A stretch of 63,990 nt of DNA, the filler included, from Lenisia limosa (lineage: Eukaryota > Protista > Breviatea): the NCBI GenBank assembly GCA_001655205.1. It is 17 parts of 17 records of this genome, joined end to end, with 100 filler letters (N's around TTAATTAATTAA, not from the genome) between each part and the next. Parts side by side here need not be neighbours in the genome. Positions count along the whole stretch, not along the records: positions 12,425 to 15,463 come from LPNZ01010641.1; 16 more parts are not named here. One strand, 5' to 3'. Positions within the stretch are counted from its first letter, which is position 1. The number at the start of each line of letters is the position of its first letter. The notes under the pieces were generated by a model. That model was not told where the DNA came from. It was given only the letters and a program-made list of their open reading frames with translations, and did no database searches. The translations under genes and the position numbers were made by a program. This document shows, piece after piece, positions 12,425-15,629 of this stretch.

Positions 12425-12500
12425 TGATGATAAAGGTGATGATGATGATGATGGTGGTGATGATGATGATAAAGGTGATGATGAAGAAGAAGATGATGAT
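12425..12500. repeat. (TGA)n-like microsatellite at scaffold start
   Basis: GATGATGAT/GGTGAT runs; similar CAT-rich runs at 33190-33250 and 62775-62810. Confidence 0.85.
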
Positions 12501-12546
12501 GGTGGAGGTAGTGGTGATCATAAACTGCTCCCCCCCCCCCCATTAC

Positions 12547-15415
12547 CTGCAAATGTGTCTGCAGCCACCTTCCAGCCTGTCCTGAGGGGTCGATGATGAG
12601 GGGTACACGACCGGTTTGAGAAAGCTGCGTAGGGGATGGTAAAATAGCAGGTTCTTACATAGGAAATACCACACATAGAGATATTGGATTATAGTATCAT
12701 ATTAATTCACCCAATCGTTTGCCCCAAATCCTCTTATTCTCAATGTAGCGTCATCATAAAATCCCCCTTACGGAGCCGTCTTCAGCCTCGGTCAGGCCGC
12801 TCGTAATACAAAGCGCATTTTCCAGGGATAAATCGTCACCAGAAAGGCCCTCGGACTGAAAAGTTAGAAATACACAATATTAAAGGTCTCCGTGCAATTA
12901 ATAAATTTGAAGTGGTCCATATTGTAGCCAGAACTCCTTTTCCCTTCTATTTCAAATTCTTTTTATACCCCCCCCCCCCCNNNNNNNNNNNNNNNNNNNN
13001 NNNNNNNNNNNNNNNNNNNNNNNNNNNNNNNNNNNNNNNNNNNNNNNNNNNNNNNNNNNNNNNNNNGGAAATTGAAGTTGTCTTGGCCACATGCCTAATA
13101 TAGTAAGTTGAGAACAAAAAAGCTGCCTAATATAGTCTAGAATTGCTCTAATATTGTTTGAAAAATAGGAGTAATAATAAACCAATAGAGGAATTCGAAT
13201 CCTAATAATAATATGACATATTGTATCTAATATGCATCAACATCAATATCATAATAAGTATGTCATATGATGTGAAACTGCCAAATATAGAAATAGTGAA
13301 GTAAAACAACATATTTGTAAACTATCTTATATAGGGAGCTATATCATGTAATATGACACATTATATGTATGAACTGCCAAATAGGGAACTAATTGCACTG
13401 AACTTACCTGTTTCCACTCCTGGGTGATCTCCATTCGCTGCTTCTCCGGCTTTCTGAAAGGTCATCCATATTAGTTATCATATGTATAAAACATAGAGAT
13501 GAGAGATAAACAAAACATGTTGTCTAAGCCGTCCATACCATCACGCTTATAAGAGNNNNNNNNNNNNNNNNNNNNNNNNNNNNNNNNNNNNNNNNNNNNN
13601 NNNNNNNNNNNNNNNNNNNNNNNNNNNNNNNNNNNNNNNNNNNNNNNNNNNNNNNNNNNNNNNNNNNNNNNNNNAGAACACCCATTTTAGACATGTCATC
13701 GGGACCCTCAAGGCAATTTCTCATCAAAACTATTGCTTTTAAGCGTTTTTAACCCATTATCAAGCATTTTAAACACCTTGTTAAGTGTTTTAAACTCGTT
13801 TTTTAAGACTTAAGTTTCTTAACTCAAGTACCCCCCACTCCGGAAGGTAGGTCTGGAACGCGGCCGCCATGAGAGCGGTGCCTGCCAGTGAGGATTCAGA
13901 GGTCATGAGAGACTTGGCTTGGTCGTCCCACCTGGCTCGTTCATTGGANNNNNNNNNNNNNNNNNNNNNNNNNNNNNNNNNNNNNNNNNNNNNNNNNNNN
14001 NNNNNNNNNNNNNNNNNNNNNNNNNNNNNNNNNNNNNNNNNNNNNNNNNNNNNNNNNNNNNNNNNNNNNNNNNNNNNNNNNNNNNNNNNNNNNNNNNNNN
14101 NNNNNNNNNNNNNNNNNNNNNNNNNNNNNCTGACCTTGAGCACGGTCCTTGACTTCGACCACTTTCTCCAATGAAACCTTGAGCTGCTCTGCCTCGCGCG
14201 TTCGACTTGAGAATTCCTAGGAAGTTTAACTCGGAAATATCAAGGACATTCGACTCAATTTCTAGTCATGACATCAGATATTATCATGACTCAAAAAAAA
14301 GACTGATTTCTCGACAAATCCTCGAAAACTGTCGAGATTTTACCGGTCTTTTTCAGACCGTAGGGAAGCCCTAATCATAACACCCCCCCACCTCCTTCAG
14401 CCCCGCAACGGTTGAATCCACCTTCTCCAGCCCGGCCTGAAGTTTCGCAATTTTGCTTCGAGATTTATCGAGTTTTTTCGTGAGTTTGCTGATCTCGGTT
14501 TCCAGTGGTTCGACCTGTGAGGGGGGAGGGGATGTGAAGGAAATCGATGAAGAATACTGGCATAAAGGTACAAATCACGAACAGAATAATCTGATTTTTT
14601 TTAAAATAAAACGAGGGGGGAAGCAAAAAAAAAGAGGGGAGGGGTATAATTGAATAATTTATGAAACAAAAAAAAAAAGAAGTCCAAATCCACCTGTCAT
14701 GATTTTCATCCTTATCATCATAGTTACTCCCCCCCCCACCACCTTCTGCAAAACATCGCTGTATTGGATATTGGCGGCGAACCAGGCAGCCAAGGGCGCT
14801 GCTGCTACTGAAACTCGGCTGCAAGGAATGGTTAATTACCCCGTTTGCCCCCTTGGATTGCCCAAAGGACGTGTAAGAAATATGATTATATGACGATGAC
14901 ATGTGGGGACCACCATACCCGATTGTTTTTTGGTTGAAACTAGTTGCTTTCTTCTTGAGTAGTTTCTTACAGTCTGCCTTGACCTCCTGGTCTATGCAAC
15001 GTGCATCAAAATGCAGTACTTGCTCCTTCACTCCTCTGGTGGGTGGGTAAAATTACCAGGCCATTAAATAGGAATTATGGCAAGGACATGTATGAAGAGG
15101 GTGAGAGAGGGGATGCGTGACTCTCAGCATACGATTCTTTTTTTTGCAGTAAAGTTTCTATTGAAATAAGGATCATGGAGATCCAGCGGTTGAATGGTGC
15201 ACAAAGAAATACACCGGGAAATCATAGAGCAAATCGGTCAAGACTTATCCCGGTCACTGTGTCAGGGAACACTAATAGTTTCATACAGACTTATTCACCT
15301 CCACCAACAATTTACTAATTGCTAAAAATGCCCCATCATAGTCCCCACCTTTGACCAAGGAATTTCTTCATACTGTTCCAACTCGTGTCATAAATGCCCA
15401 TTAGACGCAGGACTC
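12547..15415 (-). CDS. DYNC2H1: Cytoplasmic dynein 2 (IFT dynein) heavy chain, internal fragment (stalk to AAA5)
   Basis: Exons in the expected order: GVLRLMGIYDTSWNSMKKFLGQR; GVKEQVLHFDARCID; RVSVAAAPLAAWFAANIQYSDVLQK|VEPLETE; SRTREAEQLK; ERARWDDQ...ALMAAAFQTYL; SEGLSGDDLSLENAL; LIIDPSGQAGRWLQTHLQ. The last two fit dynein-2 better than other dyneins. Confidence 0.9.
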
Positions 15416-15629
15416 CTGAGGGGGGGTAAAACGAAGGGAATTTATGAAACAAAAAGCCCAAAANNNNNNNNNNNNNNNNNNNNNNNNNNNNNNNNNNNNN
15501 NNNNNNNTTAATTAATTAANNNNNNNNNNNNNNNNNNNNNNNNNNNNNNNNNNNNNNNNNNNNATGCCCTCTATATAAAAAGATAAAAGTCACACTAATA
15601 GTGCCCACTCCCCTATACGTACGGGCGAG

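Follow-up and report, generated by a model that had tools for sequence, protein, structure and literature searches.

G-run donors and C-run acceptors in introns of a dynein-2 heavy chain gene of Lenisia limosa: probable ends of an introner-like repeat

The window analyzed here is a stretch of 63,990 nucleotides (nt) of DNA from the breviate protist Lenisia limosa, joined from 17 parts (GenBank assembly GCA_001655205.1), and positions count along the whole stretch. We studied the piece from 12425 to 15463, the minus strand of which is part of the dynein-2 heavy chain gene (DYNC2H1). Most complete introns of this gene open with GT and a run of G, and several close with a run of C shortly ahead of AG. 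Here, we show that these runs are placed at splice sites far beyond chance. Moreover, the sequences that accompany them suggest that the runs are probably the two ends of an introner-like repeat, resembling a miniature inverted-repeat transposable element (MITE), which creates an intron where it inserts.

The DYNC2H1 locus and intron I3

The gene was recognized from its exons. Exons E2, E3 and E9 match the human dynein-2 heavy chain collinearly, the translation of E6 matches dynein heavy chains, and that of E4 is a generic coiled coil, in keeping with the stalk (see the table). The closest protein relatives are 35-49% identical. An independent, gap-free contig of the locus, L004 (3,124 nt; European Nucleotide Archive assembly ERZ3820729), was located through the exact product of an open reading frame (ORF) of the window. 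Window positions 15463-14130 correspond to L004 1731-3064 with a single difference (window = 17194 - L004 position), and L004 added 1,730 nt of upstream gene sequence. An Rfam search of the piece returned no RNA family, and a search of phage DNA with the piece gave no match.

A reading of the sequence alone (the sequence-only reading) had claimed a G-run donor and a C-run acceptor for the DYNC2H1 intron that extends from 14742 to 14515 (I3). Both are present on the minus strand, with GTGGTGGGGGGGGG at the donor (14742) and CATCCCCTCCCCCCTCACAG at the acceptor, which closes at 14515 with C4-T-C6-TCACAG. Exons E3 (14818-14743) and E4 (14514-14392) join into one open frame, which is open only with I3 removed. 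Splicing of 11 exons at GT..AG gives a single open frame; the remaining two frames carry 13 and 18 stops. The spliced product of 358 amino acids aligns with residues 2855-3214 of an intronless orthologue (P0039) at 42% identity with two one-residue gaps, none of which falls at any of the 10 junctions, and the alignment is gapless across the I3 junction between DVLQK and VEPLE. With this support from frame and orthologue, I3 is confirmed as a real GT..AG intron; the RNA contigs leave it uncovered. At 14738, the sense strand reads T in the window and G in all four Logan contigs and in L004. Because both of these sources read G, the I3 donor is GT followed by G12, and the plus-strand A of the window is likely a homopolymer assembly error or a variant.

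RNA contigs confirm the junctions of two neighbouring introns of the class, I0 and I1. Record 11, a contig of poly(A) RNA sequenced in the same study, joins 15035 exactly to 15349 and continues past 15417, where it equals the end of the upstream exon X6 in L004. Therefore, both junctions of I0 and the removal of I1 are established at the RNA level.

Placement of the runs and shared intron modules

Runs of at least five G or five C were counted on the sense strand over the 4,443 non-N bases of the DYNC2H1 gene. Eight of the 12 G runs begin within 12 nt past a donor (expected share 0.044, binomial p 6e-9), and six of the eight C runs finish within 12 nt of an acceptor (binomial p 2e-7). The other four G runs comprise one at an N gap, one further along the G-rich 5' end of I0, one in a nested element of IC and one within I2; the other two C runs terminate internal mini-elements. 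Exons contain no runs, no C run lies at a donor and no G run lies at an acceptor. The motif TTTTAC occurs nine times, and in eight of these its A sits 4-21 nt ahead of AG. Run placement is thus far beyond chance and strongly site- and strand-specific.

An assembly or sequencing artefact that creates spurious poly-G almost certainly does not account for this pattern. Homopolymers do break assemblies, contigs end in T runs and an N gap adjoins a G run, but two independent assemblies agree on the runs, which are embedded in unique sequence, keep a constant strand relative to the gene and are spliced out precisely in RNA contigs. The earlier statement that many N gaps sit on the runs applies to a single gap among the piece's three, that at 12981-13066, which adjoins at least 13 G.

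The runs belong to longer shared sequences. A common 5' module, composed of GT, a G run, 2-7 nt and TATGA, is found at the donors of I1, I3, I4, I8, I9 and IB. The extended motif TATGAT has nine sense and two antisense occurrences, and five of the nine sense copies lie 8-24 nt past donors. At the other end, introns IA, IB, IC, ID and I0 have in common a 3' module of 50-95 nt that leads via AGAGTTGATTTGGGCTT, a T run and GTTTCATAAATTCC to TTTTA-Cn, with AG reached 0-10 nt after the C run through variable letters. Copies of this module are 72-86% identical in pairwise comparison (IA and IB, 80% over 91 nt), and no splicing role is known for much of it, such as CAACCCTCGTGTGTTGT.AGCC..AGAGTTGATTTGGGCTT. 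A hidden Markov model (HMM) built from the five copies detected a sixth with nhmmer at L004 2501-2558 (window 14693-14636; E 1.4e-5). The same model found nothing significant on the antisense strand, and all six copies are in sense orientation.

Similarity between the introns ends at the splice sites, at GT-Gn on one side and Cn-(0-10 nt)-AG on the other, with the last 0-10 nt ahead of AG differing between copies, which limits how closely it reaches the 3' boundary. The flanking exons are unrelated, and the aligned copies sit in differing, non-homologous exon contexts of one gene. Intron ID (92 nt) consists of the element from GT to AG and nothing else; it also belongs to a class that had been described as one of longer introns, for which no length dependence is apparent. 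A nested copy with its own GT-G11 lies inside IC, and nested or tandem copies are present in I3 as well. Sharing of TATGA on the 5' side and of up to 90 nt upstream of the C runs points to copying and not to convergence; the alignments therefore support the view that the 3' modules form a family by descent rather than a set of convergent signals.

I3 itself is composite. Because the HMM finds the sixth 3'-module copy there, the first ~106 nt of I3 form a complete mini-element, made up of 14694-14742 and 14636-14693. A 17-mer of this internal copy recurs unchanged at the 3' end of I0, and its identity to I0 is 81% overall in the aligned copy. The working acceptor is supplied by the remainder of the intron (14635-14515). 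By eye, 14515-14585 resembles a second, more diverged 3' module; an nhmmer comparison of 14535-14585 with the 3' module did not reach significance.

The shared modules bear on a different explanation, in which GTGGGG-type donors, or G-run intronic enhancers, together with C-rich acceptors constitute a general splicing consensus that evolved in place in this lineage. G-rich donors are indeed near-universal in this one gene (a run of at least four G within the first 15 nt in 11 of the 14 complete introns), including introns that lack the 3' module, and donor-adjacent G runs are known splicing enhancers in vertebrates. However, the G runs are accompanied by TATGA, the C runs are preceded by common sequence of as much as 90 nt with no splicing role, and I2 and I7a splice with ordinary donors (GTATGG and GTAAGT) and plain acceptors. 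We therefore regard a consensus evolved in place as very unlikely.

We also examined how often the introns recur in the genome. DNA-like contigs of the source run were aligned to the 3-kilobase (kb) piece at 90% identity or more, yielding 3,459 contigs. Summed depth is ~22-25, as for single-copy sequence, in bins made up of exon alone or of exon and the short I2, and 1,300-63,000 in the other intron bins; it reaches 63,000 in the interior of I4 (14261-14362) and up to 43,000 in I1. For the intron interiors, matching contigs from other parts of the genome number in the hundreds to thousands. Contig joints and loose ends revealed that pieces from separate introns of this gene adjoin each other in other copies, and the I1 unit CCGGGATAAGTCTTGACCGATTT is found at other genomic places as one arm of a palindrome.

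These interior repeats could suggest that ordinary MITEs entered introns that already existed, so that their coincidence with intron ends is incidental. The interiors hold other very high-copy palindromic units that stop short of the splice sites, and the nested copies in IC and I3 are in line with such secondary insertion. Nevertheless, the modules abut the splice sites (G run 0-5 nt past GT, C run 0-10 nt ahead of AG), six of six copies are sense, ID is element throughout, and the gene carries 9.3 introns per kb of coding sequence, compared with ~7 in human DYNC2H1. We consider secondary insertion very unlikely as the origin of the modules.

Two of the interior units, 15216-15260 and 14339-14375 (depth 43,000-63,000), are joined to one another in other copies, also on opposite strands, and occur in poly(A) RNA contigs as well. 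They look like a separate MITE-like family within the introns. Scanning metagenomes for the palindromic unit GGATAAGTCTTGACCNATTT yielded three short matches (20-22 nt), which showed no similarity beyond those letters and were taken as chance. Translated intron ORFs were also compared with a protein collection to find more copies of the repeats; one search was empty and the other returned only the query's own product. A scan of IMG/VR with the 3'-module pattern produced one match, a 65-nt stretch at L007 203-271 (nhmmer 17.6 bits) that overlies the start of a phage-like ORF; we estimate that about one chance match was to be expected, and it was rejected.

The features of the gene are collected in the table. 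A second RNA contig (record 10) reads 13096-13067, then 39 letters missing from the window, then 12857. Because this contig shows an exon that ends in the gap, the G run at 12968-12980 follows a donor hidden by the gap. The exon, which starts at ~13094, is 69 nt long by the RNA contig, with its last ~41 nt inside the N gap 12981-13066, and its length of 69 nt also fits the spacing in human DYNC2H1. Microsatellites of (CAT)n and (CAC)n stand behind the G-run donors of I9, IE and IF (window 12425-12520; L004 1110-1150 and 1320-1500), and these three introns may be a second sub-family without the TTTTA-Cn module. At the E8/E9 junction (12625-12780), the protein has 10-12 extra residues (~GLTEAEDGSLSQTG) relative to two DYNC2H1 orthologues, and RNA coverage of E8 stops 3 nt short of its end. 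The extra residues may be exonised intron-end sequence, or may reflect a shifted splice site beside an element-derived intron.

Table. Exons, introns and intron parts of the L. limosa DYNC2H1 gene (window positions unless marked L004)
Feature	Position	Strand	Description
Intron I0	L004 1637-1778; 3' module at window 15416-15463	minus	ends TTCGTTTTAC7TCAG; 5' end consists of four G4-5 tracts
Intron I1	15036-15348	minus	GTGGGGACTATGATGGGG ... TAATTTTACCCACCCACCAG; palindromic very high-copy unit inside at ~15216-15260
Exon E2		minus	matches human dynein-2 heavy chain (6rla_A) residues 3248-3283
Intron I2	14819-14918	minus	outside the G/C class; own ends complementary; cognate duplex ranks 1 of 14
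Exon E3	14743-14818	minus	matches 6rla_A (PDB dynein-2) residues 3287-3310, E 3e-4; end of microtubule-binding domain, AAAPLAAW motif
Intron I3	14515-14742	minus	228 nt, GT..AG, phase 0, between E3 and E4
I3 donor GT and G run	14729-14742	minus	single T inside the run in the window at 14738
I3 TATGAT motif	14717-14722	minus	part of the common 5' module GT-Gn-N(2-7)-TATGA
I3 internal 3'-module copy	14636-14693	minus	ends CCCCTCCCC; no usable AG behind it; nhmmer hit at L004 2501-2558
I3 acceptor region	14515-14534	minus	CATCCCCTCCCCCCTCACAG
Exon E4	14392-14514	minus	stalk coiled coil 2; frame open; aligned to orthologues P0039 and P0086
Intron I4	14217-14391	minus	donor GT-G7-TGTTATGAT; acceptor without C run; most repeated interior of the piece
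Exon E6		minus	translation matches dynein heavy chains
Intron I6	13454-13838	minus	donor GT-G6-TACTTGAG; plain TTTCAG acceptor; N gap within; flanking exons align to orthologues
Intron I7a	13095-13407	minus	outside the G/C class; ends GTAAGTTCAG and CTCAACTTAC complementary
Intron I7b, 3' part	12856-12980	minus	begins with at least 13 G at 12968-12980, adjoining N gap 12981-13066; donor inside the gap
Intron I8	12625-12771	minus	GTAA-G5-ATTTTATGATG ... TATTTTACCATCCCCTACGCAG
Exon E9		minus	matches 6rla_A residues 3481-3501
Intron I9, 5' part	12425-12546	minus	GTAAT-G12-AGCAGTTTATGAT, then (CAT/CAC)n; ends at the edge of the piece

Inverted ends and pairing between intron ends

The ends of the element are imperfect inverted repeats, Gn-(A)GTAA..TTATGA on the left and TCATAA..TTTTA-Cn on the right. 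At the 5' end of I8, GGGATTTTATGA is the reverse complement of TCATAAATTCCC in the 3' module of I0 at 11 of 12 positions, and G9-TATAA of I7b is 93% complementary to TTATACCCCTCCCC inside I3. The predicted minimum-energy and centroid folds of I3 and of I0, an RNA-confirmed intron, are closed by a stem of G run and C run that covers the donor GU; the ends of I4 are unpaired in its predicted fold. By overall folding energy, I3 and I0 do no better than their dinucleotide-shuffled versions (z -1.3 and -0.4).

To compare cognate with permuted ends, duplex energies were computed for the first 25 nt of an intron against the last 40 nt. Pairing is stronger between cognate than between swapped ends (p 0.012 with 8 introns; p 0.026 with 14), and part of this signal comes from I2 and I7a, which both lie outside the class and have complementary ends of their own sequence. 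The I7a duplex ranks 1 of 14, and its energy was reached by 0 of 500 shuffles. The I7a acceptor also contains a 12-mer, CTATATTAGGCA, that occurs twice, 30 nt apart. Among the 11 introns with a G-run donor, five have a C run of at least four at the acceptor; the counts for both, G only, C only and neither are 5, 6, 1 and 2 (Fisher p 0.62). An association of the two runs within one intron, which the sequence-only reading had put forward, is therefore not significant among these 14 introns of one gene.

These data bear on the possibility that the G and C runs are under selection since their pairing bridges the intron, joins donor and acceptor and reduces the need for protein factors, which would be compatible with a transposon origin. 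The predicted closing stems of I3 and I0, the advantage of cognate over swapped ends, the complementary ends of I2 and I7a and the precedent of the fish (AC)m-(GT)n introns (PMC4691745) are in its favour. On the other hand, about half of the G-run donors are partnerless, folding energy does not exceed that of shuffles, and the predicted stem would bury the GU of the 5' splice site, which is expected to hinder U1. In addition, the C run and TTTTAC already resemble an ordinary pyrimidine tract and branch point, and inverted transposon ends would yield equal complementarity without selection. We therefore consider structure-defined introns unlikely, while giving the idea some weight. The G:C end-pairing envisaged in the sequence-only reading is thus favoured by the predicted stem and the cognate preference, but not by folding energy or by regular partnership between the runs. 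End pairing is possible and would be a natural consequence of inverted termini; it may be dispensable for splicing. For lamprey, Lin et al. 2016 (PMC4691745) give AC/GT repeats, and no statement on the G/C repeats that had been invoked as a precedent was found in their main text.

The donor region of I0 (L004 1637-1660) reads GT and then GGGG-CT-GGGG-CT-GGGGG-A-GGGG, four G tracts separated by loops of 1-2 nt. By its sequence, this is a textbook G-quadruplex motif, located directly at an RNA-confirmed 5' splice site.

A related proposal is a self-defining intron cassette, in which the G:C closing stem would be selected and functional, pairing donor with acceptor, perhaps with a G-quadruplex switch at the donor. 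We give this only a small chance. If true, thousands of young introns would be spliced via RNA structure rather than protein-mediated pairing of splice sites, and this protist would possess a transposon-delivered analogue of the (AC)m-(GT)n introns found in fish.

Origin of the G-run and C-run introns

The most satisfactory explanation, and in our judgment a probable one, is that G-run donors and C-run acceptors are the ends of an introner-like, MITE-like repeat that generates introns on insertion. The element would be short (~90-150 nt), non-coding and high-copy, and would make an intron wherever it inserts in sense orientation. Its left end would comprise GT, the G run and usually TATGA, and its right end the 50-95 nt module, TTTTA-Cn and an AG 0-10 nt further on. 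Copies of it fill most introns of the DYNC2H1 gene. GUGGGG could serve as the 5' splice site, with +1, +2 and +5 of the consensus kept and G-pseudouridine wobble with U1 at +3 and +4. TTTTAC could act as the branch point, as it fits yUnAy and lies at the usual distance, and the C run as the pyrimidine tract. With donor, branch point, tract and acceptor region all inside it, the element would carry every signal for its own removal. The G:C complementarity would arise from the inverted termini; it could zip the intron ends of the pre-mRNA together and is seemingly not required.

The sequence-only reading had offered inverted termini of an intron-generating transposon as an option. That option is favoured by the shared modules, the sense copies, the all-element intron ID and the repeated interiors. 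Several observations weigh against an introner-like origin. All aligned copies come from a single gene, and other genes enter only through summed contig depth; this depth is highest over interior units and not over the termini, although the short, run-bearing termini map poorly in any case. A target-site duplication would be indistinguishable from the ordinary AG/GT consensus: exon ends read AG in 10 of 16 by hand count, which we estimate to be about the usual splice consensus and hence uninformative. No transposase partner was seen. The two DYNC2H1 orthologues with DNA that could be used to compare intron age, P0039 among them, are both intronless. Moreover, modules combine as a mosaic, with the G-run donors of IE, IF, I4, I6 and I7b lacking the 3' module, and therefore more than one family, or heavy decay, has to be assumed. 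Finally, in seven contigs elsewhere TTTTA-C7 is followed without interruption by the palindromic unit whose start lies at window 15260, so the C run is not always the end of an element.

Introners are recognized by similarity that continues as far as the exon borders, 5' end against 5' end and 3' end against 3' end, without entering the exons (PMC12130899). They bring their own splicing needs (PMC11282704; PMC9860276), and introners whose intron ends are complementary owing to terminal inverted repeats are known from Micromonas, stramenopiles, dinoflagellates and Amoebophrya (PMC11282704; PMC7789003; PMC9860276); terminal inverted repeats and target-site duplications are present in only some known families. 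The repeat described here resembles the introners of Micromonas pusilla, Aureococcus and dinoflagellates (Gozashti et al. 2022, 2025; PMC11282704) in that short non-coding repeats make up whole introns and similarity reaches the splice sites only. Inverted termini, sense orientation, many copies, very intron-dense genes and splice signals supplied by the element are further likenesses. It differs from them in termini that are G/C homopolymer runs of 4 to at least 13 nt, in a right end that carries the branch-point-like TTTTAC with the C run as pyrimidine tract, and in modules that recombine as a mosaic. Our literature search found no paper linking introners with G-rich or G/C homopolymer ends.

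Other systems are similar in part. Amoebophrya introner elements (Farhat et al. 2021, PMC7789003) have inverted repeats of 8-20 nt, complementary ends within one intron and a predicted hairpin that joins the exon borders, an organisation also found in 1-15% of canonical introns. However, their splice sites are mostly non-canonical and variable, and U1 is apparently missing, whereas here every junction is GT..AG and the inverted repeat is based on G/C runs and joined by a conserved 3' module of considerable length. Simple complementary repeats near donor and acceptor that could bridge the intron are likewise present in the (AC)m-(GT)n introns of lamprey and teleosts (Lin et al. 2016, PMC4691745). 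Those are dinucleotide microsatellites that belong to no repeat family, and their U2AF2 independence was shown experimentally; in contrast, the runs here lie in a copied element, the stem would cover GU, and co-occurrence of the two runs is not significant (Fisher p 0.62). Euglenid nonconventional introns and the MITE-derived introns of Fritillaria borealis (PMC11282704) also have inverted ends that join their termini, and a MITE-like origin has been proposed for them, but they have non-canonical borders and no pyrimidine tract, whereas the introns here have canonical GT..AG borders and a C-rich tract. With MITEs in general, the repeat shares short length, lack of coding capacity and inverted ends; the high copy number is seen here for the intron interiors.

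Taken together, the repeat looks like a new introner family with unusual homopolymer termini rather than a new way of splicing. On the practical side, G and C runs break short-read assemblies and hide exons, and one exon of this gene ends in an N gap. No source of bursts of intron gain is better supported than introners, and few families plainly show how a mobile element supplies its splicing signals. The L. limosa element appears to hold a donor, a branch-point-like motif, a pyrimidine tract and an acceptor region within ~100 nt. The natural variants in this gene, with and without a C-run partner, nested, and with differing run lengths, could provide a test series for asking whether end pairing aids the splicing of young introns.

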